A stretch of 64,000 nt of DNA, from NCBI GenBank assembly GCA_011109175.1, contig RDEW01000069.1:117758-181757 (forward strand), read 5' to 3'. Origin of the DNA: Dicyema japonicum. Its lineage: Eukaryota > Animalia > Dicyemida. A model generated the notes under the pieces. That model had not been told where the DNA came from. It searched no databases and saw only the letters and a list, made by a program, of their open reading frames with translations. Positions 1,149 to 45,516 of the stretch are shown one piece after another (the stretch's first letter is position 1; the number at the start of each line of letters is the position of its first letter). A program made the position numbers and the translations under genes.

Positions 1149-1212
1149 TTGACTTTTTTTCCGCTTGACTTTTTTTCCGCTTGACCTTTTTTCCCCTTGA
1201 CTTTTTTTCCGC
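1149..1212. repeat. 4 x 16-bp tandem repeat TTGACTTTTTTTCCGC
   Basis: Read directly; same motif as the hairpin arms, with related copies at about 300-375 and 1052-1075. Confidence 0.85.
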
Positions 1213-1217
1213 ACTCC

Positions 1218-4596: not shown

Positions 4597-4609
4597 TTTA
4601 TTGAAAATT

Positions 4610-7382: not shown

Positions 7383-7498
7383 TCCGGAAAAAAACTTTTA
7401 GAATTAGCATAAGAAAATCAATACTTTCTAAAGTTTATTCTGGAAGCACAATTTGAAAACATAAGTACGAAAAAATTCAAAATTTTCGATTTCAGAAA

Positions 7499-11349: not shown

Positions 11350-11613
11350 TTTTTACTTGATATAATAAAGAAAACTTGTTTTCTAACCATTTTTTTCTTA
11401 CATAAAAATAGCCCACGTGTCATAATCTTAACAAAAGAACGTTTTTTATTAATTTTAACGCTATTTAAAAAGTCCGTTTTAGTGTGTTTTCCAATTTTCA
11501 CTTTAATATCGATTTGTGCTTCCGTGAAAAACTTTTAATATTATCGATTTGTGCTTCGGCGAAAAAGTTTTTGCGTCGTCAATTTATAAACGCCAAATTT
11601 GGAGCGCAAAGCA

Positions 11614-13153
11614 ATGTCAGGACGTGGTAAAGGTGGAAAAGGAGGAAAGTCAGTGCAAAGCGATTTAAAAAGATCCTGATCGATAACGTAAGAAGTTTGG
11701 ACGATTATGAGGACATCTCACGTGTGGTCTGCGACACAGCGGCCCACGTGGTACAAGGACTCTTCGAAAATAAGCCCTCTATTGGATTATATTTTAGAGG
11801 AGTCCGAGGAGTCGAGAAGCTCAGAAGGGTCGTTCGCGACTCGATCCTTCTGTCGTTCAGAGTCAATATGGGGATCGATGGCAGGGCTGCTTTCCACACT
11901 GCAGCGGACATCCCCACACAGCAAGCGGTTGATCAAGCTGTGCCTGCACCGAGGAGGATGGAGGTTGAGAGCAAGACTCAGCCTCTTGAAATGAATCAAG
12001 GACCGAGAACCGAGGGCAGGGCTGAATCCGTCACACAGCCGCGGTCCAACAGGCTGTGCCTGCCCTCGACGAAGGAAGACAAGAGGACCGTCTCCCAATG
12101 ACTGTAGGCTGGACTACAGTAGGGAGAAAGAGGAAGTCTGCGGTTTCTGCCAAACCGCAGAACGTGCGTGATTCGGGTCCAGAAACCGCAAAGTGCCCTA
12201 AAAAGCATTTTGCAGGCTCGAATCAATCCAGAGCGCACGTGCCGAAAGAAAAGAAGAAAGAACAGGTATTCGGAGGACTAACTACACTAGTTCGGCTAGA
12301 GGTGCCGAAGATGGGAGTGGTTAAACTCCTAAGTGGCATAGGTACTCTGGCTACCTATGCGAAAGGAAGGATCGTCAGACGAGGAGAATCCCACTTGTTG
12401 GTGGGATTCAGAAATGACGTGGACGCCTCAGCTTTTGAAGCTGAGGTGAATAAGAAGGTTCCTTTTGGGCCCGGGGCACATAACATGTCTCGGGTCATCC
12501 CCAAGGTACACGACTCGATTGTACTAGTCTTCGGAGTCCTCTGGACTTTGTTGATGAGGATGTACTCGAGTACATCAAAAAGGACTACCCCACGGCGCAC
12601 AAGATCGAGCGCTTCAAGAGTGGGAGTCAGAGATTAAGGACTCTCAAGGTCTGGATCAGGTCCGGAGCAGAAGCTGAAAGGATCTGCCTTGAGAAGTTAA
12701 AGATAGGTTACTTTAGATTTGGTGTGGCCCGAGAGCGACCGGTAGCAATCCAGTGCTACAGATGCCAGGGATTCGGCCACACCAGCTCCCGCTGCACTTA
12801 ATAAAGAGAAGTGCCTAAATTGCGGGGGTCCACATTCGCGGAAGGCTTGCCAAACAAGTGGCAAGTCTCTCAAGTGCGTGAACTGTGGCGCAAAAGGACA
12901 CAGGGCGAGCCATACCAAGTGCCCCCTGTATCAGGAGGCGACGGAGAAGGTACCACAGGGGAGAAGGCAGGCGCCCTCCTCTGGAATGGTCAGTGATGTA
13001 GGCACTATCCATCGGATGGTGAGTAACTATTGCAATGCCACTGGGGCTTCGCTCCAAACGGCACTTAGGGATATCGCGTTATCTCATAGGTTAAATAATG
13101 CGTCGAAGGGATGCTCAACATCGTCTTCGAAACAGGAGGACTTTAGAATATGA
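11614..13153 (+). CDS. H4(1-25)::LINE ORF1 fusion with several single-base indels
   Basis: Junction ATC GAT AAC | GTA AGA AGT TTG GAC GAT is in frame ([20 protein letters not shown]). Confidence 0.7.
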
Positions 13154-13303
13154 CGAAGACTTTTATAAAACGAAGGAGGCACGGGGAAGACGAATGTGAT
13201 GGCACGAAAACGCTGCCGCAAGGCGGTGAAAGGGCCTTTAGTTAGTTCTTCCCTAACTTAACATTTGTTTTTTTGCCTAATAAAGATTTTTCCGTTTTTC
13301 TTC
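11688..13303 (+). mobile_element. ORF1-only family A derivative in the H4 5' end
   Basis: ORF1 with 3 CCHC knuckles joined directly to the family A 3' UTR, AATAAA and TTCCG tail; no ORF2. Confidence 0.92.
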
Positions 13304-13312
13304 CGCAAATCA

Positions 13313-13620
13313 ATGTCTGGACGTGGAAAGGTGGAAAAGGAGGAAAGTCAGGTGCAAAGCGATTTAAAAAGATCCTGATCGATAACATTCAGGGGATCAC
13401 AAAGCCTGCAATTAGGAGACTGTGTCGTAGAGGAGGTGTGAGAAGGATCTCAGGCAAAATTTATGAGGAGACAAGATGTGTCCTCAGGATCTTTATTGAG
13501 AGAACTATAAGAGATTGCATTTCCTATTGTGAACACGCTAAAAGAAAAACTGTGATTGCTATGGATGTGGTCTATGCCTTGAAGAGACAAGGGAGAACAA
13601 TATATGGATTTGGTGGATGA
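13313..13620 (+). CDS. H4: Histone H4 regenerated downstream of the insertion (1-nt indel near start)
   Basis: Full H4 sequence restarting at cgcaaa-caATG. Confidence 0.88.
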
Positions 13621-16574: not shown

Positions 16575-16868
16575 TTTTTACTTGATATAATAAAGAAAAC
16601 TTGTTTTCTAACATTTTTTTCCTTACATAAAAATAGCCCACGTGTCATAATCTTAACAAAAGAACGTTTTTTATTAAATTTAACGTAATAAGAACGTTTT
16701 TTATTATTTTTAACGCTATTTAAAAAGTCCGTTTTAGTGTGTTTTCCAATTTTCACTTTAATATCGATTTGTGCTTCCGTGAAAAACTTTTAATATTATC
16801 GATTTGTGCTTCGGCGAAAAACTTTTTGCGTCGTCAATTTATAAACGCCAAATTTGGAGCGCAAAGCA

Positions 16869-18542
16869 ATGTCTGGACGTGGTAAAGGTGGAAAAGGAGG
16901 AAAGTCAGGTGCAAAGCGATTCAAAAAGATCCTGATCGATAACATTCAGGGATCACAACACATTCCGTACGAAATCTTGAGGATTATCAGGACATCTCAC
17001 GTGTGGTCTGTGATACAGCGGCCCACGTGGTACAAGGACTCTTCGAAAAATAAGCCCTCTATTGGATTATATTTTAGAGGAGTCCGAGGAGTAGAGAAGC
17101 TCAGAAGGGTCGTTCGCGACTCGATCCTTCTGTCGTTCAGAGTCAATATGGGGATCGATGGCAGGGCTGCTTTCCACACTGCAGCGGACATCCCACACAG
17201 CAAGCGGTTGATCAAGCTGTGCCTGCACCAAGGAGGATGGAGGTTGAGAGCAAGACTCAGCCTCCTGTAATGGATCAAAGGACCGAGGAAAAACATCCCA
17301 GCAAAGCTAGCGGTGAACAAGCTGTGCCTGGGACAAGGAGGATGGAGGTTGAGGGCAAGACTCAGCCTCTTGAAATGAATCAAGGACGAGAACCGAGGGC
17401 AAGGGCTGAATCCGTCACACAGCCAAGCGGTCCAAACAGGCTGTGCCTGCCCTCGACGAAGTGCGACAAGAGGACCATCTCCCAATGACTGTAGGCTGGA
17501 CTACAGTAGGGAGAAAGAGGAAGTCTGCGGTTTCTGCCAAACCGCAGAACGTGCGTGATTCGGGTCCAGAAAACCGCAAAGTGCCCTAAAAGCATTTTTG
17601 CAGGCTCGAATCAATCCAGAGCGCACGTGCCGAAAGAAAAGAAGAAAGAACAGGTATTCGGAGGACTAACTACACTAGTTCGGCTAGAGGTGCCGAAGAT
17701 GGGAGTGGTTAAACTCCTAAGTGGCATAGGTACTCTGGCTACCTATGCGAAAGAAGGATCGTCAGACGAGGAGAATCCCACTTGTTGGTGGGATTCAGAA
17801 ATGACGTGGACGCCTCAGCTTTTGAAGCTGAGGTGAATAAGAAGGTTCCTTTTGGGCCCGGGGCACATAACATGTCTCGGGTCATCCCCAAGGTACACGA
17901 CTCGATTGTACTAGTCTTCCGGAGTCCCTCTGGACTTTGTTGATGAGGATGTACTCGGAGTACATCAAAAGGACTACCCCACGGCGCACAAGATCGAGCG
18001 CTTCAAGAGTGGAGTCAGAGACTAAGGACTCTCAAGGTCTGGATCAGGTCCGGAGCGGAAGCTGAGAGGATCTGCCTTGAGAAGTTTAAGATAGGTTACT
18101 TTAGATTTGGTGTGGCCCGAGAGCGACCGGTAGCAATCCAGTGCTACAGATGCCAGGGATTCGGCCACACCAGCTCCCGCTGCACTTATAAAGAGAAGTG
18201 CCTAAATTGCGGGGTCCACATTCGCGAAGGCTTGCCAAACAAGTGGCAAGTCTCTTCAAGTGCGTGAACTGTGGCGCAGAAGGACACAGGGCGAGCCATA
18301 CCAAGTGCCCCCCTGTATCAGGAGGCGACGGAGAAGGTACCACAGGGGAGAAGGCAGGCGCCCTCCTCTGGAATGGCCAGTGATGTAGGCACTATCCATC
18401 GGATGGTGAGTAACTATTGCAATGCCACTGGGGCTTCGCTCCAAACGGCACTTAGGGATATCGCGTTTATCTCATAGGTTAAATAATGCGTCGAAGGGAT
18501 GCTCAACAATCGTCTTCGAAACAGGAGGACTTTAGAATATGA
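16869..18542 (+). CDS. H4(1-30)::LINE ORF1 fusion with many single-base indels
   Basis: Same junction as 32002 (gatcacaa|cacattccgtacgaaatc); in frame if one homopolymer G is restored. Confidence 0.65.
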
Positions 18543-18693
18543 CGAAGACTTTTATAAAACGAAGGAGGCACGGGGAAGACGAATGTGATGGCACGAAACG
18601 CTGCCGCAAGGCGGTGAAAGGGCCTTTAGTTAGTTCTTCCCTGATTACTTAACATTTGTTTTTTGCCTAATAAAGATTTTTCCGTTCCGATCC
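16959..18693 (+). mobile_element. ORF1-only family A derivative in the H4 5' end
   Basis: ORF1 plus 3' UTR plus ttccgttccga tail, followed by cgcaaagcaATG of H4. Confidence 0.92.
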
Positions 18694-18702
18694 CGCAAAG
18701 CA

Positions 18703-19011
18703 ATGTCAGGACGTGGGAAAGGTGGAAAAGGAGGAAAGTCAGGTGCAAAGCGATTCAAAAAGATCCTGATCGATAACATTCAGGGGATCACAAAGCCTGC
18801 AATTAGGAGACTGTGTCGTAGAGGAGGTGTGAGAAGGATCTCAGGCAAAATTTATGAGGAGACAAGATGTGTCCTCAGGATCTTTATTGAGAGAACTATA
18901 AGAGATTGCATTTCCTATTGTGAACACGCTAAAAGAAAAACTGTGATTGCTATGGATGTGGTCTATGCCTTGAAGAGACAAGGGAGAACAATATATGGAT
19001 TTGGTGGATGA
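18703..19011 (+). CDS. H4: Histone H4 regenerated downstream of the insertion
   Basis: Intact 102-aa ORF. Confidence 0.95.
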
Positions 19012-19796: not shown

Positions 19797-21062
19797 CTTT
19801 TCGATAAATCAAATAAATATAATTTGTCTCTTTTTTTTAAATTAACCTAATCCCGACAAAATTTAAGAAAAATTAAAAGTCCAATCCTTTCGCCTAATTG
19901 ATAATGTTTTTCGAGACGCAATGTCGTTTTAAATTGTTAATTCACGGAATTTCTAATCATACGCAGTTTCTATCAACTAGCTAAAAATAGCCTATATAAA
20001 ACCCAACTTCAATGTAACAAACTAACCAAATAAATCTCAAGTACAAAAATAAGACAAATTTTTAATTTTGAGACTGTTTAAAAAACAAAAAAACTATATC
20101 ATTTTGGTTTAATGTAACAAACTAACCATATAAAATCTCCCTTTAATTACATAAATAAGACAAATTTTTAATTTTAACGCTGTTAAATAACAATTTGATT
20201 ATAATATAAAAATTAAATAAATCGCTGTCGAAAAATTGGGGTCAAAAATCCAGGTTTTTGCGGCTGATTGATCTCAAACCAAGTTCATTCAACGCGTCTT
20301 GCTTTTGCGCGTTAAAATGTGAAATCAGATTGATAATTGGACGCACGTGGGCGGAGATTTGATAATTGATTAATTTTAGTTTTTAGAAATTAAATTTGTC
20401 TATTATTCTTGTTTATGTAAGCCTTGTTAACCTTTAACTAAATTAATTTATTTTTTTGATTACCTAAATGCTCATTCTAAGATAGTTCTAGATATTGACT
20501 TAGTCAGCTAGGCTTACAGTTGGGTAGTATTAATGTAACTTTTTTCTAAATAACTTTTGTAAGTGACTGATTATTCTATTTAAGAGACTGAAACGGTATA
20601 TAGAGGGGAGCAACTTTCTACGACCTAATCAATTTGGATTCCGTCTGGGAAGATCATGTGGAGATTGTATCCACTCACTAAACTACGAAATTATAAATAC
20701 ATTGGAGAAGAAATTGATTTGTCTAATTAAATTTGTCTACTATTCTTGTTTATGTAAGTCTTGTTATCCTTTAACTAAATTAATTTAGTTTTTTGATTAT
20801 CCAATTGCTACAAGATAGTTCTTGACTTGTCAGCTAGGGTTACAGTTGGTTAGTAATAATGTAACTTTTTGCAATATAACTTTTGTAAGTAATTAAGTTT
20901 CAATTTTATTTATAGGGTTTTACTCCTTTGGATAATTTTCCGATAGATATCTTGACAAAATAAAGGCAGATGTCTTATTACTTAGGGATCAAATAGATTT
21001 CTGGCTAGCAAGTACTATATTGATAAGAGTCAATTAAAGTAAAGGTTTATTTAATAAAATTG

Positions 21063-21425
21063 TTAAGTGGATGCTGGTTTTGCGGGCTCAGCACTTTTGC
21101 GACAGATGTATCTTCCGCAAGAGATTATTGCATTTTGGGTAAGTTCTTTTAATTCGTCATCGGCATTGATTGCGACAGACAGGTGACAAGGTTTGATCCT
21201 TCGCTTTGCAGCCTTGAGTGCAGTATTACCACAAAGTTCCAGCACTTCAGCACATAGATACTCCATTACAGCTCCAACGTAGATGGCAGCACCAACTGCA
21301 ACTCGCATTCTGGTCTCACTTCTCAAGCATCTATGAATTCGACCAACTGGAAATTGCAAGCCTGCTCTAACTGATTTGCTTTTCGCTTTTGTACGTACTT
21401 TTCCACCTTTGCCGCGAGTAGACAT
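21063..21425 (-). CDS. H2A: Histone H2A
   Basis: Intact 120-aa ORF. Confidence 0.95.
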   Translation of the reverse strand: MSTRGKGGKVRTKAKSKSVRAGLQFPVGRIHRCLRSETRMRVAVGAAIYVGAVMEYLCAEVLELCGNTALKAAKRRIKPCHLSVAINADDELKELTQNAIISCGRYICRKSAEPAKPAST

Positions 21426-21587
21426 TTTATTGAAAATTTTGAATTTTTTCGTACTTATGTTTTTAAATTGTGCTTCCGGAAAAAACTTTTAAATTAGCAT
21501 AAGAAAATCAATACTTTCTAAAGTTTATTCTGGAAGCACAATTTGAAAACATAAGTACGAAAAAATTCAAAATTTTTGATTTAGACT

Positions 21588-21955
21588 ATGGTTCAAAAAG
21601 TTAGCACAAAAGGATCTAAAAGGCTGCAGTTAAAGTTAGTAGCACAACACGTGCCTTACGAAAAAAGAAAAAGCGATCCCAAAACTATCATTTGTACATT
21701 CTGAGGATTTTGAAATCTGTCCACACTGATTTGGGGATGTCAAAGAAAGCTATGATGGCTATGGACAGCTTTACTTTTGACATTTACGAAAAAATCAAGA
21801 ACGAAGCTTGCAATCTAGTTCAGCATAATAGCAAAGCTACTATCACATCAAGAGAAATTCAAACAGCAGTACGCTTGATTTTGCCTGGAGAATTGGCAAA
21901 GCATGCTATTACCGAAGGGGCAAAGGCGGTCACCAAGTATACCAATACTAAGTGA
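21588..21955 (+). CDS. H2B: Histone H2B (1-nt indel near the 5' end)
   Basis: Aligns to intact copies. Confidence 0.88.
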
Positions 21956-22248
21956 TTTTTACTTGATATAATAAAGAAAACTTGTTTTCTAACCATTTTT
22001 TTCCTTACATAAAAATAGCCCACGTGTCATAATCTTAACAAAAGAATGTTTTTTATTAATTTTAACGCAATAAGAACGTTTTTTATTATTTTAACGCTAT
22101 TTAAAAAGTCCGTTTTAGTGTGTTTTCCAATTTTCACTTTAATATCGATTTGTGCTTCCGTGAAAAACTTTTAATATTATCGATTTGTGCTTCGGCGAAA
22201 AATTTTTGCGTCGTCAATTTATAAACGCCAAATTTGGAGCGCAAAGCA

Positions 22249-22557
22249 ATGTCTGGACGTGGTAAAGGTGGAAAAGGAGGAAAGTCAGGTGCAAAGCGAT
22301 TCAAAAAGATCCTGATCGATAACATTCAGGGGATCACAAAGCCTGCAATTAGGAGACTGTGTCGTAGAGGAGGTGTGAGAAGGATCTCAGGCAAAATTTA
22401 TGAGGAGACAAGATGTGTCCTCAGGATCTTTATTGAGAGAACTATAAGAGATTGCATTTCCTATTGTGAACACGCTAAAAGAAAAACTGTGATTGCTATG
22501 GATGTGGTCTATGCCTTGAAGAGACAAGGGAGAACAATATATGGATTTGGTGGATGA
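22249..22557 (+). CDS. H4: Histone H4, uninterrupted
   Basis: Intact 102-aa ORF. Confidence 0.97.
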
Positions 22558-22904
22558 CTTTTTTTAATAAAAAAATAAATTTTTATCTATATTAAATTCT
22601 GAGATATAAATTAAGTCGTTTTAGGGTTACAAGAAGCTTTCTATAAATAGTGTTTTTTATGAATTCTAAATACACAGTGATAATTTTAAAATTTTGTAAA
22701 ATAGCTTTTTTCTACTTTAATGTGGTAAAATTTTGCTTAAAATAATGCTTTGATAATTTTAAAAAAAATTGTGTTTTGATAATTTTCCAAATTGTGCTTC
22801 CGGAAAAAAATTACTTGCTCTCTCGTATTGTTGCAAAATTGCGTGTGCTTCCGCGAAAAATTTAAGCGTACGTTAGTATTAATACAAAATTTTTGATTTA
22901 GACT

Positions 22905-24574
22905 ATGGTTCAAAAAGTTAGCACTAAAGGATCTAAACGGGCTGCAGTTAAAGTTAGTAGCACAACAAGTTCCGTAAGAAGTTTGGACGATTACCAGGAC
23001 ATCTCACGTGTGGTCTGTGATACAGCGGCCCACGTGGTAAATGGACTCTTCGAAAATAAGCCCTCTATTGGATTATATTTTAGAGGAGTCCGAGGAGTCG
23101 AGAAGCTCAGAAGGGTCGTTCGCGACTCGATCCTTCTGTCGTTCAGAGTCAATATGGGGATCGATGGCAGGGCTGCTTTCCACGCTGCAGCGGACATCCC
23201 CACACAGCAAGCGGTTGATCAAGCTGTGCCTGCACCGAGGAGGATGGAGGTTGAGAGCAAGACTCAGCCTCCTATAATGGATCAAGGGACATGGAAAAAG
23301 ACCAGGCCTACTTCATACACATCAGAGGACATCCCCACACAGCAAGCGGTTGAACAAGCTGTGCCTGCACCGAGGAGGATGGAGGTTGAGAGCAAGACTC
23401 AGCCTCTTGAAATGAATCAAGGACCGAGAACCGAGGGCAGGGCTGAATCCGTCACACAGCCAGCGGTCCAACAGGCTGTGCCTGCCCTCGACGAAGTGCG
23501 ACAAGAGGACCATCTCCCAATGACTGTAGGCTGGACTACAGTAGGGAGAAAGAGGAAGTCTGCGGTTTCTGCCAAACCGCAGAACGTGCGTGATTCGGGT
23601 CCAGAAACCGCAAAGTGCCCTAAAAAGCATTTTGCAGGCTCGAATCAATCCAGAGCGCACGTGCCGAAAGAAAAGAAGAAAGAACAGGTATTCGGAGGAC
23701 TAACTACACTAGTTCGGCTAGAGGTGCCGAAGATGGGAGTGGTTAAACTCCTAAGTGGCATAGGTACACTGGCTACCTATGCGAAAGGAAGGATCGTCAG
23801 ACGAGGAGAATCCCACTTGTTGGTGGGATTCAGAAATGACGTGGACGCCTCAGCTTTTGAAGCTGAGGTGAATAAGAAGGTTCCTTTTGGGCCCGGGGCA
23901 CATAACATGTCTCGGGTCATCCCCAAGGTACACGACTCGATTGTACTAGTCTTCGGAGTCCCTCTGGACTTTGTTGATGAGGATGTACTCGAGTACATCA
24001 AAAAGGACTACCCACGGCGCACAAGATCGAGCGCTTCAAGAGTGGGAGTCAGAGACTAAGGACTCTCAAGGTCTGGATCAGGTCCGGAGCAGAAGCTGAA
24101 AGGATCTGCCTTGAGAAGTTAAAGATAGGTTACTTTAGATTTGGTGTGGCCCGAGAGCGACCGGTAGCAATCCAGTGCTACAGATGCCAGGGATTCGGCC
24201 ACACCAGCTCCCGCTGCACTTATAAAGAGAAGTGCCTAAATTGCGGGGGTCCACATTCGCGGAAGACTTGCCAAACAAGTGGCAAGTCTCTCAAGTGCGT
24301 GAACTGTGGCGCGGAGGGACACAGGGCGAGCCATACCAAGTGCCCCCTGTATCAGGAGGCGACGGAGAAGGTACCACAGGGGAGAAGGCAGGCGCCCTCC
24401 TCTGGAGTGGTCAGTGATGTAGGCACTATCCATCGGATGGTGAGTAACTATTGCAATGCCACTGGGGCTTCGCTCCAAACGGCACTTAGGGATATAGCGT
24501 TATCTCATAGGTTAAATAATGCGTCGAAGGGATGCTCAACATCGTCTTCGGAACAGGAGGACTTTAGAATATGA
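22905..24574 (+). CDS. H2B(1-21)::LINE ORF1 fusion, ORF1-only type, one indel near 24012
   Basis: [32 protein letters not shown]...; C-terminus ...[23 protein letters not shown]. Confidence 0.82.
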
Positions 24575-24730
24575 CGAAGACTTTTATAAAACGAAGGAGG
24601 CACGGGGAAGACGAATGTGATGGCACGAAAACGCTGCCGCAAGGCGGTGAAAGGGCCTTTAGTTAGTTCTTCCCTGATTACTTAACATTTGTTTTTTTGC
24701 CTAATAAAGATTTTTCCGTTCCGTTCCGTT
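22968..24730 (+). mobile_element. ORF1-only family A derivative preceded by an H2B leader (22886-22967)
   Basis: Ends AATAAAGATTTTTCCGTTCCGTTCCGTT followed by a second H2B leader. Confidence 0.92.
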
Positions 24731-24735
24731 AGACT

Positions 24736-26364
24736 ATGGTTCAAAAAGTTAGCACAAAAGGATCTAAACGGGCTGCAGTTAAAGTTAGTAGCACAAAAAG
24801 TTCCGTAAGAAGTTTGGACGATTACCAGGACATCTCACGTGTGGTCTGTGATACAGCGGCCCACGTGGTAAATGGACTCTTCGAAAATAAGCCCTCTATT
24901 GGATTATATTTTAGAGGAGTCCGAGGAGTCGAGAAGCTCAGAAGGGTCGTTCGCGACTCGATCCTTCTGTCCTTCCGAATAAACATGGGGATCGATGGCA
25001 GGGCTGCTTTCCACGCTGCAGCGGACATCCCCACACAGCAAGCGGTTGATCAAGCTGTGCCTGCACCGAGGAGGATGGAGGTTGAGAGCAAGACTCAGCC
25101 TCCTATAATGGATCAAGGGAAATGGAAAAAGACCAGGCCTACTTCATACACATCAGAGGACATCCCCGCACAGCTAGCGGTTGAACAAGCTGTGCCTGGG
25201 ACGAGGAGGATGGAGGTTGAGAGCAAGACTCAGCCTCTTGAAATGAATCAAGGACCGAGAACAGAGGGCAGGGTTGAATCCGTCACACAGCCAGCGGTCC
25301 AACAGGCTGTGCCTGCCCTCGACGAAGGAAAACAAGAGGACCGTCTCCCGATGACTGTAGGCTGGACTACAGTAGGGAGAAAGAGGAAGTCTGCGGTTTC
25401 TGCCAAACCGCAGAACGTGCGTGATTCGGGTCCAGAAACCGCAAAGTGCCCTAAAAAGCATTTTGCAGGCTCGAATCAATCCAGAGCGCACGTGCCGAAA
25501 GAAAAGAAGAAAGAACAGGTATTCGGAGGGCTAACTACACTAGTTCGGCTAGAGGTGCCGAAGATGGGAGTGGTTAAACTCCTAAGTGGCATAAGTAGTC
25601 TGGCTACCTATGCGAAAGGAAGGGTCGTCAGACGAGGAGAATCCCACTTGTTGGTGGGATTCAGAAATGACGTGGACGCCTCAGCTTTTGAAGCTGAGGT
25701 GAATAAGAAGGTTCCTTTGGGCCCGGGGCACATAACATGTCTCGGGGTCATCCCCAAGGTACACGACTCGATTGTACTAGTCTTCGGAGTCCCTCTGGAC
25801 TTTGTTGATGAGGATGTACTCGAGTACATCAAAAAGGACTACCCCACGGCGCACAAGATCGAGCGCTTCAAGAGTGGGAGTCAGAGACTAAGGACTCTCA
25901 AGGTCTGGATCAGGTCCGGAGCAGAAGCTGAGAGGATCTGCCTTGAGAAGTTAAAGATAGGTTACTTTAGATTTGGTGTGGCCCGAGAGCGACCGGTAGC
26001 AATCCAGTGCTACAGATGCCAGGGATTCGGCCACACCAGCTCCCGCTGCACTTATAAAGAGAAGTGCCTAAATTGCGGGGGTCCACATTCACGGAAGGCC
26101 TGTCAATCCAGAGTCAGGTCTCTCAAGTGCGTGAACTGTGGCTTGGAGGGACACAGGGCGAGCCATACCAAGTGCCCCCTGTATCAGGAGGCGACGGAGA
26201 AGGTACCACAGGGGAGAAGGCAGGCGCCCTCCTCTGGAGTGGTCAGTGATGTAAGCGCTGTCCACCGCGTGGTAAGTCGATACTGTAGCAGCACAGGTTC
26301 AACGTTCCCTAATGCGCTTAGGGACATTGCGCTCTGCGATAGGAAGGTAAGTGCGGCGAAGTGA
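24736..26364 (+). CDS. H2B(1-20)::LINE ORF1 fusion protein, 542 aa, intact (Gag-like, three CCHC zinc knuckles)
   Basis: H2B N-terminus in frame with ORF1; [43 protein letters not shown]. Confidence 0.9.
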   Translation: MVQKVSTKGSKRAAVKVSSTKSSVRSLDDYQDISRVVCDTAAHVVNGLFENKPSIGLYFRGVRGVEKLRRVVRDSILLSFRINMGIDGRAAFHAAADIPTQQAVDQAVPAPRRMEVESKTQPPIMDQGKWKKTRPTSYTSEDIPAQLAVEQAVPGTRRMEVESKTQPLEMNQGPRTEGRVESVTQPAVQQAVPALDEGKQEDRLPMTVGWTTVGRKRKSAVSAKPQNVRDSGPETAKCPKKHFAGSNQSRAHVPKEKKKEQVFGGLTTLVRLEVPKMGVVKLLSGISSLATYAKGRVVRRGESHLLVGFRNDVDASAFEAEVNKKVPLGPGHITCLGVIPKVHDSIVLVFGVPLDFVDEDVLEYIKKDYPTAHKIERFKSGSQRLRTLKVWIRSGAEAERICLEKLKIGYFRFGVARERPVAIQCYRCQGFGHTSSRCTYKEKCLNCGGPHSRKACQSRVRSLKCVNCGLEGHRASHTKCPLYQEATEKVPQGRRQAPSSGVVSDVSAVHRVVSRYCSSTGSTFPNALRDIALCDRKVSAAK

Positions 26365-29074
26365 TGTTACGCATCATTTCAGTTAATGTTAGGTCCCTCC
26401 GGAGAAGAAGGAAGGCCATCGAGGATCTTCTGGACTCTTTGGAGGTGGACATCTTGGTCCTTAACGAGACCAAGAGTAAGGATACGGCTGCTGCAGGCTT
26501 TAAAGGCTATACTAGTTGTCATCTCTTGTGGAATGACACACATAGAGGTTCGGGCACTAGTATCTATTGGAGGACGAGTCTAGCAGCAGTCGTCCAAGGT
26601 ATTGCAAATTGTCCTCATTGCGAGCTAATATTATTACGAATCAGGTTATCTGGCTTTAGCGTTGTTATAGGGGCAATGTATGCCAAGCAGTTGTGGTTGT
26701 GTAAGGACCACATTAAAACTGTATTTGACATTCATCCCCATTGCGTTATTTTTGGTGATCTGAATGCTAAGCATTCAGATTTTGGCTGTTTTGTTAATAA
26801 TAGGGCTGGATCAGCACTCCGGGAATTAGCTTGGAATCTTGGGCTCTCAGTCACTACATCGACGGACCCCAATCACAAAGATACACGAGGAGGAGAGGAC
26901 TTCTTGGGTATGGCCGTAGCCTCCCCTTCATTAATTGGTATGCTCTCTGTACCTCGTGTTCTTAGGGACATCGGAAGCGATCACCGTCCCCTACTCACTG
27001 AGCTTCACGAACCTGTTCGACCTCAGGCCCCAATTGGCTATGACTTGGGCTCTGGCACTTGGGATAACCTGGAGTCGTTCATGGATAGAAAACTCCCTTC
27101 TCTCAAAGGGCAAGTTTGTAGTGAAGCGGACGTGGAGGAATTGGATGCCACCCTGGGTGGTATCCTCGAGGAATACATGCGGACTAACTTCCGGTTACGT
27201 CCGCAAGGTGGAGGCTCCGCACGAATTCCAGGCCTGATTTTAAGTAAGATAACACTTAGAAAGAGGTACCTGCGGTTCAAAGCGAGGAGCACGTATGAAG
27301 AGAACCGGATCTTCTACCAGAAGAAGGTAAACACCTTACGAAGGGAAATCCGGAAGGCGCTTGTTGACTATCAGAGCAACAAATGGAGGAGGGCCTGCGA
27401 GAGGGTGAACCCCGCATGGCCGGACTTCTGGAGTCAGCTGAAGCGCCTGTCGGGCAGAGGGGAAGAGTCATCTGCGCGTACCCTGTGTCGTGCGGACGGT
27501 TCTAAAACCTCTGACCCGACTGAAATAGCGAGCATCTTTGCAGGTAGCTTTAGGGCAGTTACTGCAGTTCGACCAGAGAACTTTGTCGAGTTAACAGCTC
27601 GACAAAGTATAGAGGACGTCATCTCTGCGGAGAGACGGAAGTTGAGCCACTCTCGGGAGATCCCGAAGGTGGCATGCATCACCGAGGAGGAGGTCCGGGC
27701 CGCGATAAGTAAATCGAAGAACAACGCACCGGGCCAAGACAAGATCCCCATGGCCCTTTTCAAGAAAGGACCTGGAAGTCTCGTGAACACCTTGGTAAGA
27801 TTGTACAACGGTAGTACAGGTTGGGTTACGTTCCTAGGCGTTGGAAGGAAGCGGAACTGGTTTTTGTAAGGAAACCAGGAAAACCTCCTGAAGACCCTAG
27901 TAGCTACCGCCCTATAAGCTTGTTACCTGCCGTTGCTAAAATCTTAGAGAGAGTGATACACCAGAGGTTAACCCAGGAATGCATAATAAAAGACACCCTC
28001 TCGGACCTTCAGATGGGATTCCGTGAGGGGCGTTCCTGTGGGGACTGCCTCTGGAGGTTGAGCTCTCAGATTCGTGAAAGGAGCAAGAAGCAATGCACAG
28101 CCGCGTTGTTCCTGGATGTGGAGAGGGCGTTCGACTCGGTCTGGCATGACGGCCTCCGTTGCGCCCTCGCAGAAGGAGGAATATCTCTGGAGCTAAGGAG
28201 CTGGTTATCAAGCTTCTTAGAGGATCGGATGAACTATGTAAGGCATAAAGGTTGCCGATCTAGTTTGTTTAGATCTAACCGGGGAGTTCCACAAGGGTCG
28301 GTTTTGAGCCCCACCCTTTTCAACGTTTACATGTCTACACTTCCCCACCCAGCCAATGTGAGGACGGAGATGGCTATCTATGCGGACGACATAGTACTCT
28401 GGGATCACTCGTGGAAACCAGATGTAGCGTGTCGGAGGATTCAAGTAGCTGTCAATGAAATCATACGCTGGTGTGGGAGCAGAGGACTTAGGCTGAGACC
28501 TGAGAAATGTAAGTTATTAGTTTTTGGCCGCCCTAAGCGGTCTAATAATTTAATACCTAGAGTAACCATCTATGGGGTACCTATAGAGGTTACTGGGCGG
28601 ACGAGCTACCTTGGAGTGACATTCAACTCCAAGTGTAGTTTCCAGGAGCACACCGCCCTCGTTAAGAGGCGGGCTGTGCAAAGATTAGGAGCGTTGAGGG
28701 CTTTTCAGCTGAGTCGCGATGCCTGGGCCAAAGTGTTCAACGCCATGGTGCTGCCTATGCTCACCTATGGTGCGCACTCCTGGTATTGTAGTGAGGAACG
28801 CGAAAAGTGCCTCACCAACTTGAGGAAGGTTCGGCGGCGGGCAATACGGTATTCTATAGGATTGTCTTATAGAGCGCCGCTGCCCGAAAGAGGATATCCG
28901 ATTTCAGGACCCGAGGAAGTGATTAAAAAGATCTTAAAAAATTAAAGAAGGAGGCACGGGGAAGACGAATGGATGCACGAAAACGCTGCCGCAAGGCGGT
29001 GAAAGGGCCTTAGTTAGTTCTTCCCTATTACTTAACATTTGTTTTTTGCCTAATAAAGATTTTTCCTTCCTTTC
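24797..29074 (+). mobile_element. Near-intact autonomous family A LINE (ORF1 + ORF2 + 3' UTR), probably I/Jockey/R1-group, 3' end 27 nt upstream of the H3 ATG
   Basis: Two ORFs, AATAAA and ttccttcc tail, then aatcgataattttc of the H3 leader. Confidence 0.95.
26364..28945 (+). CDS. LINE ORF2: APE endonuclease + reverse transcriptase, ~860 aa, with single-base indels near 27815 and 28900
   Basis: ISVNVRSL, LNETK, GDLNAKH, SDH; APGQDKI, YRPISLL, FLDVERAFDSV, GVPQGSVLSPTLF, YADD, YLGV. Confidence 0.92.
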
Positions 29075-29101
29075 AATCGATAATTTTCATTTTCATTAAT
29101 A

Positions 29102-29512
29102 ATGGCACGAACAAAACAAACTGCTAGAAAATCAACTGGAGCAAAAGTTCCAAGGAAACAGCTTTCTGCTAAATCTGCACGCAAGTCAGTTTCTCAATTG
29201 GGTGGTGTAAAGAAACCACATCGCTTTCGTCCTGGTGTCGTGGCAATGAGGGAGATCAGAAGATATCAAAAGAGTACTGACCTTCTATTGCGAAAGACAC
29301 CGTTCCAAAGGGTTGTTAGAGAAGCAGCACAATTTATGAAGACAGATTTACGTTTCCAATCATCGGCCATTGTTGCTCTTCAGGAGGCTGCAGAGACTTA
29401 TTTGGTCGGGATTTTTGAGGATAGTAATTTGTGTGCAATACATGGAAAACGAGTAACAATAATGCCACAGGATATGCACCTAGCAAGGAGAATTCGTGGT
29501 GAAAAAACATAA
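29102..29512 (+). CDS. H3: Histone H3
   Basis: Intact 136-aa ORF. Confidence 0.97.
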
Positions 29513-30784
29513 CTTTTCGATAAATCAAATAAATATAATTTGTCTCTTTTTTTTAAATTAACCTAATCCCGACAAAATTTAGGAAAAATAAAAATCCAAT
29601 CCTTATAGCCTAATTGATAATGTTTTTCGAGACGCAATGTCGTTTTAAATTGTTAATTCACGGGAATTTCTAATCATACGCAGTTTCTATCAACTAGCTA
29701 AAAATAGCCTATATAAACCCAACTTCAATGTAACAAACTAACCAAATAAATCTCAAGTACAAAAATAAGACAAATTTTTAATTTTGACACTGTTTAAAAA
29801 ACAAAAAAACTATATCATTTTCTTTTAATGTAACAAACTAACCATATAAAATCTCCCTTTAATTACAAAAATAAGACAAATTTTTAATTTTGACACTGTT
29901 AAATAACAATTTGAATATTATATATAAAATTAAATTAATCGCTGTCGAAAAATTGGGGTCAAAAATCCAGGTTTTTGCGGCTGATTGATCTCAAACCAAG
30001 TTCATTCCACGCGTCTTGCTTTTAGGCGTTAAAATATGAAATCAGATTAAAAATTGGACGCACGTTTGCGGAGATTTGATAATTGATTATTTTTTAGTTT
30101 TTATAAATTAAATTTGTCTATTATTCTTGTTTATGTAAGCCTTGTTAACCTTTAACTAAATTAATTTATTTTTTTGATTACCTAAATGCTACATTCTAAG
30201 ATAGTTCTAGATATTGACTTAGTCGGCTAGGCTTACAGTTGGTTAGTAATAATGTAACTTTTTTCAAAATAACTTTTGTAAGTGACTGATTATTGTATTT
30301 AAGAGACTGAATCGGTATATAGAGGGGAGCAACTTTCTACGACCTAATCAATTTGGATTCCGTCCGGGAAGATCATGTGGAGATTGTATCCACTCACTAA
30401 ACTACGAAATTATAAATACATTGGAGAAGAAATTAATTTGTCTAATTAAATTTGTCTACTATTCTTGTTTATGTAAGTCTTGTTATCCTTTAACTAAATT
30501 AATTTTTTTTTGATTATCCAATTGCTACATTCCAGATAGTTCTTGACTTGTCAGCTAGGGTTACAGTTGGTTAGTAATAATGTAACTTTTTGCAAGATAA
30601 CTTTTGTAAGTAATTAAGTTTCAATTTTATTAATAGGGTTTTACTCCTTTGGAGTAATTTTCCGATAGATATCTTGACAAAATAAAGGCAGATGTCTTAT
30701 TACTTAGGGATCAAATGATTTCTGGCTAGCAAGTACTATAGTTGATAAAAGTCAATTAAAGTAAAGGTTTATTTAATAAAATTG

Positions 30785-31147
30785 TTAAGTGGATGCTGGT
30801 TTTGCGGGCTCAGCACTTTTGCGACAGATGTATCTTCCGCAAGAGATTATTGCATTTTGGGTAAGTTCTTTTAATTCGTCATCGGCATTGATTGCGACAG
30901 ACAGGTGACAAGGTTTGATCCTTCGCTTTGCAGCCTTGAGTGCAGTATTACCACAAAGTTCCAGCACTTCAGCACATAGATACTCCATTACAGCTCCAAC
31001 GTAGATGGCAGCACCAACTGCAACTCGCATTCTGGTCTCACTTCTCAAGCATCTATGAATTCGACCAACTGGAAATTGCAAGCCTGCTCTAACTGATTTG
31101 CTTTTCGCTTTTGTACGTACTTTTCCACCTTTGCCGCGAGTAGACAT
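30785..31147 (-). CDS. H2A: Histone H2A
   Basis: Intact 120-aa ORF. Confidence 0.95.
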   Translation of the reverse strand: MSTRGKGGKVRTKAKSKSVRAGLQFPVGRIHRCLRSETRMRVAVGAAIYVGAVMEYLCAEVLELCGNTALKAAKRRIKPCHLSVAINADDELKELTQNAIISCGRYICRKSAEPAKPAST

Positions 31148-31342
31148 TTTATTGAAAATTTTGAATTTTTTCGTACTTATGTTTTTAAATTGTGCTTCCG
31201 GAAAAAACTTTTAGAATTAGCATAAGAAAATCAATACTTTCTAAAGTTTATTCTGGAAGCACAATTTGAAAACATATAAGTACGAAAAAATTCAAAATTT
31301 TCGATTTCAGACTATTTTGATTTGATTGAATTTTCGAAGACT

Positions 31343-31711
31343 ATGGTTCAAAAAGTGAGTACTAAAGGATCTAAAAGAGCTGCAGTTAAAGTTAGTAGCA
31401 CAACACGTGCCTTACGAAAAAAGAAAAAGCGATCCCAAAACTATCATTTGTACATTCTGAGGATTTTGAAATCTGTCCACACTGATTTGGGGATGTCAAA
31501 GAAAGCTATGATGGCTATGGACAGCTTTACTTTTGACATTTACGAAAAAATCAAGAACGAAGCTTGCAATCTAGTTCAGCATAATAGCAAAGCTACTATC
31601 ACATCAAGAGAAATTCAAACAGCTGTACGTTTGATTTTGCCTGGAGAATTGGCAAAGCATGCAATTACCGAAGGGGCAAAGGCGGTCACCAAGTATACCA
31701 ATACTAAGTGA
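31343..31711 (+). CDS. H2B: Histone H2B
   Basis: Intact 122-aa ORF. Confidence 0.97.
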
Positions 31712-32001
31712 TTTTTACTTGATATAATAAAGAAAACTTGTTTTCTAACATTTTTCTTACATAAAAATAGCTCACGTGTCATAGTCTTAACAAAAGAATG
31801 TTTTTTTATTATTTTAGCGCAATAAGAACGTTTTTTATTATTTTTAACGCTATTTAAAAAGTCCGTTTTAGTGTGTTTTCCAATTTTCACTTTAATATCG
31901 ATTTGTGCTTCCGTGAAAAACTTTTAATATTATCGATTTGTGCTTCGGCGAAAAATTTTTGCGTCGTCAATTTATAAACGCCAAATTTGGAGCGCAAAGC
32001 A

Positions 32002-33675
32002 ATGTCAGGACGTGGTAAAGGTGGAAAAGGAGGAAAGTCAGGTGCAAAGCGATTCAAAAAGATCCTGATCGATAACATTCAGGGGATCACAACACATTCC
32101 GTACGAAATCTTGAGGATTATGAGGACATCTCACGTGTGGTCTGCGACACAGCGGCCCACGTGGTACAAGGACTCTTCGAAAATAAGCCCTCTATTGGAT
32201 TATATTTTAGAGGAGTCCGAGGAGTAGAGAAGCTCAGAAGGGTCGTTTCGCGACTCGATCCTTCTGTCATTCAGAGTTAATATGGGGATCGATGGCAGGG
32301 CTGCTTTCCACACTGCAGCGGACATCCCCACACAGCAAGCGGTTGATCAAGCTGTGCCTGCACCGAGGAGGAGGATGGAGGTTGAGAGCAAGACTCAGCC
32401 TCCTGTAATGGATCCAAGGACCGAGGAAAACATCCCAGCACAGCTAGCGGTTGAACAAGCTGTGCCTGGGACGAGGAGGATGGATGTTGAGAGCAAGACT
32501 CAGCCTCTTGAAAAGAATCAAGGACCGAGAACCGAGGGCAGGGCTGAATCCGTCACACAACCAGCGGTCCAACAGGCTGTGCCTGCCCTCGACGAAGTGC
32601 GACAAGAGGACCATCTCCCGATGACTGTAGGCTGGACTACAGTAGGGAGAAAGAGGAAGTCTGCGGTTTCTGCCAAACCGCAGAACGTGCGTGATTCGGG
32701 TCCAGAAACCGCAAAGTGCCCTAAAAGCATTTTTGCAGGCTCGAATCAATCCAGAGCGCACGTGCCGAAAGAAAAGAAGAAAGAACAGGTATTCGGAGGA
32801 CTAACTACACTAGTTCGGCTAGAGGTGCCGAAGATGGGAGTGGTTAAACTCCTAAGTGGCATAGGTACACTGGCTACCTATGCGAAAGAAGGATCGTCAG
32901 ACGAGGAGAATCCCACTTGTTGGTGGGATTCAGAAATGACGTGGACGCCTCAGCTTTTGAAGCTGAGGTGAATAAGAAGGTTCCTTTTGGGCCCGGGGCA
33001 CATAACATGTCTCGGGTCATCCCCAAGGTACACGACTCGATTGTACTAGTCTTCGGAGTCCCTCTGGACTTTGTTGATGAGGATGTACTCGAGTACATCA
33101 AAAAGGACTACCCCACGGCGCACAAGATCGAGCGCTTCAAGAGTGGGAGTCAGAGACTAAGGACTCTCAAGGTCTGGATCAGGTCCGGAGCGGAAGCTGA
33201 GAGGATCTGCCTTGAGAAGTTAAAGATAGGTTACTTTAGATTTGGTGTGGCCCGAGAGCGACCGGTAGCAATCCAGTGCTACAGATGCCAGGGATTCGGC
33301 CACACCAGCTCCCGCTGCACTTATAAAGAGAAGTGCCTAAATTGCGGGGGTCCACATTCGCGGAAGGCTTGCCAAACAAGTGGCAAGTCTCTCAAATGCG
33401 TGAACTGTGGCGCAGAAGGACACAGGGCGAGCCATACCAAGTGCCCCCTGTATCAGGAGGCGACGGAGAAGGTACCACAGGGGAGAAGGCAGGCGCCCTC
33501 CTCTGGAATGGTCAGTGATGTAGGCACTATCCATCGGATGGTGAGTAACTATTGCAATGCCACTGGGGCTTCGCTCCAAACGGCACTTAGGGATATCGCG
33601 TTATCTCATAGGTTAAATAATGCGTCGAAGGGATGCTCAACATCGTCTTCGAAACAGGAGGACTTTAGAATATGA
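32002..33675 (+). CDS. H4(1-30)::LINE ORF1 fusion with a few single-base indels downstream
   Basis: Open across the junction: MSGRG...[27 protein letters not shown]. Confidence 0.8.
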
Positions 33676-33830
33676 CGAAGACTTTTATAAAACGAAGGAG
33701 GCACGGGGAAGACGAATGTGATGGCACGAAAAACGCTGCGCAAGGCGGTGAAAGGGCCTTTAGTTAGTTCTTCCCTGATTACTTAACATTTGTTTTTTGC
33801 CTAATAAAGATTTTTCCATTCCATTTTTCC
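32093..33830 (+). mobile_element. ORF1-only family A derivative in the H4 5' end
   Basis: ORF1 plus 3' UTR plus ttccattcca tail, followed by H4 upstream sequence from -55. Confidence 0.92.
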
Positions 33831-33885
33831 GCGAAAAACCTTTTGCGTCGTCAATTTATAAACGCCAAATTTGGAGCGCAAAGCA

Positions 33886-34193
33886 ATGTCTGGACGTGGT
33901 AAAGGTGGAAAAGGAGGAAAGTCAGGTGCAAAGCGATTCAAAAAGATCCTGATCGATAACATTCAGGGGATCACAAAGCCTGCAATTAGGAGACTGTGTC
34001 GTAGAGGAGGTGTGAGAAGGATCTCAGGAAAATTTATGAGGAGACAAGATGTGTCCTCAGGATCTTTATTGAGAGAACTATAAGAGATTGCATTTCCTAT
34101 TGTGAACACGCTAAAAGAAAAACTGTGATTGCTATGGATGTGGTCTATGCCTTGAAGAGACAAGGGAGAACAATATATGGATTTGGTGGATGA
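33886..34193 (+). CDS. H4: Histone H4 regenerated downstream of the insertion (1-nt homopolymer indel)
   Basis: Aligns to intact H4. Confidence 0.88.
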
Positions 34194-45270: not shown

Positions 45271-45516
45271 ATTAAAGGAATTGACGAATATGAGGATGTC
45301 TCACGCGTGGTTCAGTGACTCTTCTCAAATAAACCTTCTATTGGAATTTATTTTAGAGATGTCAAAGGCTTGGAAAAACTCAGGCTGGTCGTTCGCGACT
45401 CGGTCCTCCTGGCTTTCCGAGTGAATATGGGGATCGATGGCAGGGCTGCTTTTCACACGGGAGCGGACATTTCCCCACAGTCAGCGGTTGAACATGCTGT
45501 GCCTGCTACGAGGAGG
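45271..45516 (+). mobile_element. Diverged remnant of a family-A-related ORF1 N-terminus
   Basis: [61 protein letters not shown]. Confidence 0.85.

Follow-up and report, generated by a model that had tools for sequence, protein, structure and literature searches.

The promoter of an H3 gene in a histone gene array of Dicyema japonicum carries a retrotransposon insert that opens with the 5' leader and first codons of an H2B gene. The insert is 6.2 kb long and lies in one histone unit (unit D) of the window that we analysed, a 64,000-nucleotide stretch of contig RDEW01000069.1. H3-promoter DNA flanks both of its ends, and it contains two copies of one LINE, an ORF1-only copy (D1) followed by a full-length copy (D2, 24728-29074, 4347 nt). 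We consider it probable that an RNA with an H2B leader was retrotransposed into the H3 promoter and that the ORF1-only copy was added afterwards.

The left flank is colinear with units A, B, C and E until TATTAATAC(A) at 22885/22886, and the H3 promoter picks up again at 29075 (AATCGATAA...). Relative to the intact units, 11 nt of target are missing, or 13 nt if the shared CA is assigned to the leader. The H3 coding sequence of unit D is intact but is separated from its own TATA box by the insert. The imported leader is unambiguous over 18 nt (22887-22904), or 18-20 nt long with the CA overlap counted, and is identical at 20 of 20 positions to that of the H2B gene in the same unit (ATG at 21588). 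The second H2B piece starts at 24731 (-5), or at 24729 (-7) if two shared T's (24729-24730) are counted. It matches the H2B gene of unit C at 68 of 68 positions from -7 to +61, and the two imported pieces differ from each other at 2 of 68. With a match to H2B over 84-89 nt at 97-100% identity, chance is excluded. The layout proposed in an earlier sequence-only reading (H3-upstream DNA, H2B leader, 21 codons, ORF1-only copy, second leader, longer copy, H3) was found in full, and its estimates of about 19 nt of leader and about 12 nt of missing H3 DNA agree with these measurements. No insert is present at this site in five other units of the window, and the same holds for a contig of a second assembly (L001) and for a run of 'organism B'. 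Assembly GCA_000949405.1, which PMC10591384 lists as Vollenhovia emeryi, has a 2255-nt contig with the exact H2B protein and a 98%-identical histone unit. Among named proteins, the nearest to the H2B of the array is from Octopus sinensis (89% over two thirds of the length).

Table 1 Features of the insert in histone unit D and its surroundings (positions in the window).
Feature	Position	Strand	Basis
H2B gene of unit D; 1-nt deletion around codon 12; leader matches the imported one	21568..21955	+	
TATTAATA box of the H3 promoter; final intact H3-upstream motif 5' of the insert	22877..22884	+	Colinearity with intact units A, B, C, E
D1, ORF1-only non-autonomous copy: leader, broken ORF1, 3' UTR, (TTCCG)n tail	22885..24730	+	
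5' junction: CA common to H3 flank and H2B -20/-19 (2-nt microhomology)	22885..22886	+	
Imported H2B 5' leader, -18 to -1; equals leader of unit-D H2B gene	22887..22904	+	
H2B codons 1-21; sole in-frame ATG for ORF1 of the ORF1-only copy	22905..22967	+	
Diverged extension of H2B homology, about +64 to +77; also in H4-fused copies	22968..22981	+	
Second H2B piece: leader from -5 and codons 1-21, directly 3' of the D1 tail	24731..24798	+	
H2B::ORF1 frame of the full-length copy, intact, 542 aa; three CCHC knuckles near the C-terminus	24736..26364	+	
ORF2 (AP endonuclease and reverse transcriptase), two frames	26361..28945	+	
3' UTR with AATAAA and short TTCC-type tail; 3' junction of the full-length copy	28946..29074	+	
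Remainder of the H3 promoter, 27 nt, then the intact H3 coding sequence (29102-29512)	29075..29512	+	

The H3 promoter on both flanks and a right boundary at the exact 3' end of the element make retrotransposition the best reading of the insert. It starts within the H2B 5' leader, ends at a 3' tail and has cost the target 11-13 nt, which is the signature of target-primed reverse transcription. An ordinary target-site duplication was considered as the source of the H2B piece and rejected, since it would not place H2B at an H3 target, a point on which we agree with the sequence-only reading. No read or contig was seen to bridge 22886, 24730 or 29075, and the structure thus rests on the assembly; the listed short Logan contigs (X1, X3, X5, X6; 21450-27400) included no piece across 22886 or 24730. 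The insert could therefore be ascribed to a DNA-level rearrangement (ectopic recombination or templated repair) or to an assembly error in a high-copy array, with no retrotransposition of the leader. This would be in keeping with the want of a bridging read among the pieces on 21450-27400, with the depth in run X1 (summed contig depth of about 0.7-1.0 million for the histone unit vs 0.01-0.05 million for the element) and with the clear rearrangement of other copies (1220-3049; 42066, 49357, 56587). However, misassembly and homologous recombination join within common repeats, whereas at each of the three junctions here the sequences are unrelated and overlap by 0-2 nt. If a copy resident in H2B had recombined with one resident in H3, the product should carry the H2B promoter, not the H3 promoter up to its TATA box; the H2B promoter was not brought along, so a recombination product does not fit. 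A patch templated during repair would hardly stop precisely at the tail of the element. We regard rearrangement or misassembly as extremely unlikely.

The element is an APE-type non-LTR retrotransposon (LINE), as given by its endonuclease and reverse transcriptase domains, its CCHC knuckles and its constant 3' end. All copies have a common 3' UTR and a short TTCC(G) tail, and their 5' ends vary. ORF2 of the full-length copy is split into a frame with the endonuclease domain (26361-27869; PF03372, E=1.4e-13; PF14529, E=9e-10) and one with the reverse transcriptase domain (27821-28945; PF00078, E=1.4e-40), the best solved relatives of the latter being the R2 and L1 ORF2 proteins. The frame is broken near 27815, where comparison with three other copies shows a 1-nt gap. 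The copy that had been called autonomous from the sequence is thus frameshifted in ORF2, and every copy in the window has at least one broken ORF. ORF1 gave zf-CCHC matches. An exhaustive HMMER search with it matched 8787 library proteins over residues of about 250-500 only, thousands of them C-terminal halves of LINE ORF1, and yielded none that covers the N-terminal 250 residues or bears a histone head. A word-indexed protein search with the fusion protein returned two weak matches. For the endonuclease half of ORF2 there was no match among solved structures or in the word-indexed search, and a protein search with ORF2 found no relatives. A feature search gave no clade beyond a generic 'jockey-like' label.

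Five ORF1-only copies are present in the window, which keep ORF1 and the 3' end of the full-length partner and lack ORF2. They consist of full-length positions 2-1550, about 140 nt, and then positions 4214-4347 at 93-94% identity, with about 135 nt of 3' UTR in common with the full-length copy (93-94% identity). ORF1 of D1 is broken into 22905-24059 and 24146-24574. D1 is a mosaic that resembles the full-length copy until about 23350 and the ORF1-only family from about 23432. Over 22961-23350 it is 97.7% identical to the full-length copy vs 92.5-94.2% to its own family, and over 23432-24445 the values are 96.8% vs 98.7-98.9% (Fisher P = 3e-6 for the switch). This mosaic, the geometry of target-primed reverse transcription and the position of the internal junction 21-23 nt from the H3 TATA box favour the full-length copy as the first arrival, with a later insertion of the ORF1-only copy into the imported leader. 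The RNA import put forward in the sequence-only reading is supported by the structure (H3 flanks, end at the tail, start in the H2B leader). Its proposal that the longer copy arrived second is not, as geometry and mosaic make the upstream ORF1-only copy the most likely later arrival.

We envisage two steps. A full-length RNA, starting at or upstream of H2B -20, would have been reverse-transcribed where the H3 promoter was nicked, 21 nt 3' of the first base of the TATTAATA box. Its cDNA would have lacked homology at H3, and its 5' end would have been joined via the CA microhomology with loss of the 11-13 nt of target, leaving the H2B leader visible before H3. In the second, less certain step, an ORF1-only relative may have been mobilised in trans through the common 3' UTR, with a nick in the same H3 promoter, 21-23 nt from the same TATA box and within the imported leader at H2B -5/-7. 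Its 5' side may have been resolved by homology with the resident copy, which would have duplicated H2B -5..+63 and given the new copy a full-length-like stretch of ~400 nt at its start. Against this step, D1 and D2 differ by 2.3% over the supposedly duplicated part, at the upper limit for a duplication at insertion, and the two H2B pieces differ as stated above.

Alternatively, the block may have entered in a single event, in which the reverse transcriptase jumped from the 5' end of the full-length RNA (H2B -5) onto the 3' terminus of an ORF1-only RNA, or copied a 6.2-kb read-through RNA from a tandem H2B donor. A single pair of target boundaries and a single target deletion go with the block, and end-to-end template jumping is established for LINE reverse transcriptases (R2). 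As a rule, the H4 genes of the array hold copies head to tail with a histone 5' piece duplicated, which makes a tandem H2B donor plausible. A single event would, however, reduce to coincidence both the position of the internal junction (H2B -5/-7) at 21-23 nt from the H3 TATA box, like two other junctions, and the switch in D1 at ~23350-23432, unless the latter had arisen at the donor. Read-through would also have had to ignore the AATAAA and the 3' end of the first copy. On balance we find a single event unlikely and retain the two insertions.

The 542-aa ORF1 begins at the H2B ATG, and its first internal methionine is residue 84. Comparison of the 36 codons preceding Met 84 with those of an 81%-identical relative gave 8, 4 and 13 differences at the three codon positions. 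The excess at third positions indicates that these 36 codons are coding and hence that an upstream start is needed. The element ORF1 has no start codon of its own and would borrow that of the histone gene. The occupied histone gene would supply transcription, the 5' UTR, the ATG and the first 21 (H2B) or 25-30 (H4) codons. With promoter, 5' UTR, ATG and first codons all coming from the host gene, the host piece would belong to the RNA template, and dependence on a protein-coding host gene would make 5' transduction obligatory and selectable.

In copies fused to H4 the first 16 nt agree with native H2B +62..+77 at 13 of 16 positions (empirical P ~1e-4), and this H2B stub is joined to H4 at a common CACAA. 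The H2B-type copies are identical to the same stretch at 11 of 16 positions (empirical P ~4e-3). The H2B homology, which had been taken to end at codon 21, therefore continues in diverged form to about +77. The stub indicates that the H4-fused copies descend from an H2B-fused ancestor that moved into H4, independent support for the earlier suggestion that the element carries its leader along. In one contig H2B +77 is fused to an internal position of the element, implying that H2B-resident copies exist elsewhere; within the window we found no H2B-resident full-length donor. The diverged homology to ~+77, in H4-fused copies too, would also be expected if the element had captured the H2B piece a single time long ago and kept it as its own 5' UTR and start codon, with the donor under any promoter. 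The H2B pieces moreover diverge (2/68) about as much as the element bodies (2-3%). Yet -20..+61 agrees at 97-100% with present-day H2B genes, down to a leader variant that occurs in some units only, and the 16 nt that follow +61 are 19-31% diverged, a step that fits repeated refreshment from H2B targets better. A donor under an H3 TATA box should also start transcription near the ATG and lose the leader. We consider one old capture very unlikely and favour an RNA with a leader from an H2B gene.

The imported leader starts at the CA of TTCAAAATTTT, a motif common to H2A and H2B promoters, and this start may mark the H2B transcription start, as the sequence-only reading suggested; the CA microhomology at the 5' junction also allows a template RNA longer than the leader. 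CATAAG was considered as the TATA box of H2A and H2B and rejected: it lies just 19 nt from the CA start, and AATTT(A/G)AAAA, 28-29 nt upstream, fits better. An Rfam search of 20000-31500 with E up to 1 found no histone 3' stem-loop; its matches, all sub-threshold, were to the palindromic H2A/H2B promoter.

Every copy whose 5' end is intact lies in sense orientation in a histone promoter or 5' coding region, and truncated copies at 1220, 42066, 49357 and 56587 sit in other DNA. The 3' junctions are at H4 -8/-9, H4 -54, H3 -31 (unit-C numbering), the H3 promoter at ~22853 and H2B -5, that is, at at least four different sites and not at one precise nucleotide of one gene. Those at H4 (-8), H3 and D1 (in its present context) are 21, 21 and 23 nt from the start of TATAAA/TATTAA, a position with a background frequency of 0.7%; this rule was noticed post hoc, on three of the five junctions. 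The other two fall between C and GCGAAAAA, with no nearby TATA box. We tentatively raise the possibility that the LINE traps promoters, measuring its nick about 21 nt downstream from the TATA box instead of reading a target sequence. This is where the Pol II pre-initiation complex first opens DNA. If so, the element could settle under any histone promoter, taking its transcription start, 5' UTR, ATG and histone N-terminal tail, and would be a possible case of targeting via promoter architecture rather than sequence. The H2B leader before H3, with a second insertion at an equal distance from that TATA box although the sequence there is foreign, would then record this mechanism directly.

The mismatch between H2B leader and H3 target is a natural experiment that sets a leader copied from the target against one carried in the RNA. 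It offers a way to mark where the template RNA began, and a system for the resolution of 5' junctions with and without homology. An ORF1 with the N-terminal tail of H2B or H4 also raises the question of nuclear import or chromatin binding of the particle.

In the literature searched, a limited library, we found no histone-gene-targeted LINE or ORF1 fused to a histone start. H2B -20/-18..+63 lies between the H3-promoter flank and the element body, with H3 flank after the tail, as in a 5' transduction. Such transductions are known for L1 and SVA, among them SVA_F1 with MAST2 exon 1 and a chimpanzee STK40-SVA subfamily (PMC6139936, PMC10681720). As there, host-promoter-transcribed sequence sits on the 5' end of the RNA, lands at unrelated places and can come to mark a subfamily that propagates. 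The host exon of SVA is spliced on and unneeded for an element protein, whereas here the host piece is contiguous, gives ORF1 its start and N-terminal codons in frame, and stems from the element's own preferred target family. The element also resembles SINEU, in which U1/U2 snRNA-derived heads are recurrently added to the 5' end of a SINE (PMC4494074). In both, a host-gene piece is repeatedly added 5' and travels with the retroposon, and heads are exchangeable. The SINEU heads, however, are non-coding snRNA on a SINE, whereas here a coding start is found on a LINE and its ORF1-only derivative. The latter recalls HAL1 (half-L1), reportedly described by Bao and Jurka in 2010 as ORF1-only L1 derivatives. 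Like HAL1 it is non-autonomous, lacking ORF2 but retaining ORF1 and the 3' end of the autonomous partner, but HAL1 belongs to another LINE lineage, has its own start codon and lacks a host-gene fusion. Other LINEs occupy multicopy genes: R2/R1 in rDNA, Utopia/Keno in U2 snRNA genes and NeSL/SLACS in spliced-leader genes (PMC4640811, PMC5035012). The Dicyema element is like these in its tandem multicopy target family, constant sense orientation, apparent lack of a promoter and tolerance through redundancy. The targets of those LINEs are RNA genes, each hit at a single exact nucleotide and in most cases by restriction-like endonucleases, whereas here an APE-type element occupies protein-coding Pol II histone genes. 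R2 removes its host part by a ribozyme, whereas here it would be kept and translated. LINEs of multicopy genes have thus been known for RNA genes, with a host part that is cut off or non-coding, and 5' transduction has been known as an occasional accident; in this array the two are combined.

Histone units of ~5.4 kb form a tandem array over the first 38 kb of the window, with H2A on the minus strand and H2B, H4 and H3 on the plus strand of each unit. These units have been invaded by a non-LTR retrotransposon whose ORF1 carries CCHC knuckles; its ORF2 has an AP-endonuclease domain, and a reverse-transcriptase domain is also present. This LINE has a full-length form of 4347 nt and a short, ORF1-only form, which consists of element positions 2-1550 and the last ~135 nt (ORF1 plus the 3′ UTR) and is present five times in the window. 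At least one reading frame is broken in every copy within the window. For the N-terminal half of ORF1, the protein libraries searched contained no homologue. ORF1 holds an internal tandem repeat of ~135 nt (DIPTQQAV...; 25019-25253 and 23188-23422), 30 nt of which are absent from the H4-resident copies.

Copies of the histone-fused LINE, parts of the unit-D insert, mosaic segments and 3′ junctions at the TATA distance
Feature	Coordinates	Description
Full-length copy	24728-29074	
ORF1-only copy 1	11687-13296	
ORF1-only copy 2	16954-18693	
ORF1-only copy 3 (D1)	22885-24730	unit D
ORF1-only copy 4	32088-33826	
ORF1-only copy 5	37537 to N gap	
Unit-D insert (6.2 kb), part 1		H2B leader from -20/-18
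Unit-D insert, part 2		H2B codons 1-21
Unit-D insert, part 3		ORF1-only copy and (TTCCG)n tail
Unit-D insert, part 4		second H2B piece, -5/-7 to codon 21
Unit-D insert, part 5		full-length copy and tail
D1 segment	22961-23350	97.7% to full-length copy, 92.5-94.2% to own family
D1 segment	23432-24445	96.8% to full-length copy, 98.7-98.9% to own family
3′ junction	22241	box (TATAAA or TATTAA) at 22220; junctions 21-23 nt downstream of the box's first base
3′ junction	19355	box at 19334
3′ junction	22898-22900	box at 22877

The H3 promoter of unit D stays colinear with its counterparts in the other units as far as TATTAATAC(A) at 22885/6, then starts again at 29075, with 11-13 nt of intact-unit sequence lost in between. 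Both H2B pieces of the insert (positions relative to the H2B ATG) are 97-100% identical to the H2B genes of the window, and units A, B, C and E all have the empty site, as do a contig of another assembly and a run of organism B, a second coded organism. The H3 flanks, the H2B pieces and the empty sites confirm, at the sequence level, the anatomy proposed by the sequence-only reading. Three corrections were made to that reading. Compared with three other copies, the full-length copy, which it had called autonomous, has a 1-nt gap near 27815 that splits its ORF2; the ORF1 of D1, the ORF1-only copy in the insert, is broken; and the H2B homology extends beyond the 21 codons given for it. Only short contigs were obtained from the sequencing runs, none of those listed bridges the insert junctions, and the structure rests on the assembly.

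Since H3 promoter lies on both flanks, 11-13 nt apart in intact units, the event was an insertion into that promoter. On the right, the insert stops precisely at the 3′ end common to every copy of the family, the end at which target-primed reverse transcription begins. On the left, it starts within the H2B 5′ leader, where only CA is common to the target. The H3 flanks and these two boundaries leave standing the earlier proposal that an RNA from an H2B promoter was reverse-transcribed and inserted before H3, and the insert is best read as an RNA-mediated import of the H2B leader. Target-site duplication is ruled out as the source, as had been argued, because it cannot put H2B sequence at an H3 target. 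If copies had recombined homologously, or if the assembly were wrong, sequences would be expected to be joined inside shared repeats and the H2B promoter to be brought along; neither was observed. Contigs of sequencing run X1 (21450-27400) contain two junctions absent from the window, one of an element tail with the H3 promoter near 22848-22853 and one of H2B +77 with element position 23158, indicating further insertions in other units of the array.

The imported leader starts at the CA of TTCAAAATTTT, a motif that occurs in both of the divergent promoters, H2A and H2B, with an AATTT(A/G)AAAA box 28-29 nt upstream of it. A Pol II start would be expected at this position, and it is plausible that the leader start is the H2B transcription start. 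The 2-nt microhomology would allow for a longer RNA, and 5′ truncation is frequent in LINEs.

The second, full-length element had also been proposed to have inserted into the imported leader. Target-primed reverse transcription leaves the incoming element upstream of the target sequence that it duplicates, so that an insertion at -5 predicts the order H3 flank, leader -20..+63, new copy, tail, -5..+63, old copy. The observed order fits this prediction if the ORF1-only copy is the newcomer. D1 is a mosaic of full-length-like and own-family-like parts (Fisher P = 3e-6), and a 30-nt indel is common to its segment 22961-23350 and the full-length copy. An ORF1-only newcomer would have entered the imported leader at -5 and had its 5′ side resolved by homology with the resident copy, for which reason a mosaic would be expected; later gene conversion would look the same. 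For D1, the distance from the first base of the H3 TATTAATA box to the 3′ junction is 21-23 nt. The 3′ junctions at H4 (-8) and at H3 itself are each 21 nt from a TATA-like box, and in the native H2B context a box of this kind is missing at 21-23 nt. Three of five independent 3′ junctions are found at this distance, for which 0.7% of positions in insertion-free array DNA qualify (nominal P = 4e-6, for a rule noticed post hoc), and the other two lie between C and GCGAAAAA, a motif common to the H3 and H4 promoters. Order, mosaic and TATA distance are consistent with insertion into the imported leader, provided that the ORF1-only copy is taken as the newcomer. One-step models, by template jumping or by read-through of an H2B-resident tandem donor, could also have produced the insert.

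The sole intact ORF1 (24736-26364, 542 aa) has the H2B ATG as its start codon, and its next in-frame Met is residue 84. Comparison of the 36 codons before Met 84 with an 81%-identical relative revealed 8 changes at first, 4 at second and 13 at third codon positions, and 8 of the 17 changed codons are synonymous. These changes indicate that the stretch is coding and requires an upstream start. In the H4 genes, the same ORF1 continues the histone frame after H4 codon 30 in units C and E and after codon 25 in unit B. Judged from these sequences, the LINE appears to rely on a histone gene to supply promoter, 5′ UTR, ATG and initial codons.

A CACAA common to both genes marks the two fusion points, within AGCACAA for H2B and ATCACAA for H4. 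Over the 16 nt after CACAA, the H4-fused copies agree with native H2B +62..+77 at 13 positions (11/14 without the first two bases; empirical P ~1e-4) and the H2B-fused copies at 11. The match of the H4-fused copies indicates their descent from an H2B-fused ancestor, with the cDNA joined to H4 at the 5-nt microhomology. At the unit-B junction, H4 +75 is joined to GTAAGAAG, which opens with H2B-type body sequence, and the same junction is the one that run X1 and organism B show at depth. Identity to H2B is ~100% up to +61 and is followed by 19-31% divergence; the likely cause of the step seems to be renewal of the leader's 5′ part from H2B targets whenever an integration is homologous. A second, complete H4 gene follows each H4-resident ORF1-only copy (11605-13320, 16860-18710 and 31990-33890), with a duplicated H4 piece of 83 nt in unit B, 99 nt in unit C and ~145 nt in unit E. 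These copies have a constant, in-frame 5′ junction and a variable 3′ junction, the opposite of an ordinary target-site duplication.

Three tandem 7.4-kb repeats occupy 41089-63300, each with an element copy truncated at both ends (full-length positions 1411-4280) and a 200-nt piece of the 81%-identical relative of the ORF1 5′ region (45317-45517, the piece compared with ORF1, and 52607-52807); single N's lie at 41088 and 59459 in this region. At 1100-3049, a rearranged full-length-type copy begins at element position 872, behind four CTTGACTTTTTTTCCG-like repeat copies, and ends within ORF2 at 3049, where histone spacer DNA starts. A second, unrelated LINE (APE and RT, no ORF1 seen) is located on the minus strand at 4597-7400, just upstream of the H2A ATG of unit A. 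Its 3′ junction lies at about -12 to -14, with ~38 nt of promoter deleted, the CATAAG motif included, and it is not fused to the histone frame. The GCCGCAAAGGCGG hairpin in its 3′ UTR resembles GCCGCAAGGCGG of the histone-fused family.

The histones of the array are divergent, unusually so for an animal, with H3 and H4 roughly 80% identical by eye to the canonical proteins. AATAAA is located after H4, and a search of 20000-31500 detected no histone 3′ stem-loop. The array may consist of variant, polyadenylated histone genes in a very large number of copies. In the run X1 contigs (21450-27400), the summed contig depth of histone DNA is 15-80x that of the element. The same histone unit is found, at ~98% DNA identity, on the 2255-nt contig DF945167.1 (GCA_000949405.1, listed as the ant Vollenhovia emeryi), whose H2B protein is identical to that of the array; the closest named protein comes from Octopus sinensis. 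Contamination has affected one data set, or else the host of the array differs from one of the labels.

The nearest known phenomena to the histone-fused LINE are of four kinds. HAL1 elements are ORF1-only. SVA subfamilies are founded by 5′ transduction (PMC6139936), LINEs are co-transcribed with multicopy RNA genes (PMC4640811, PMC5035012), and SINEs carry exchangeable snRNA heads (PMC4494074). In none of the four is a protein-coding Pol II host found together with a host head translated in frame and with several junction sites within a single gene family, and no description of this combination was found in the literature searched.
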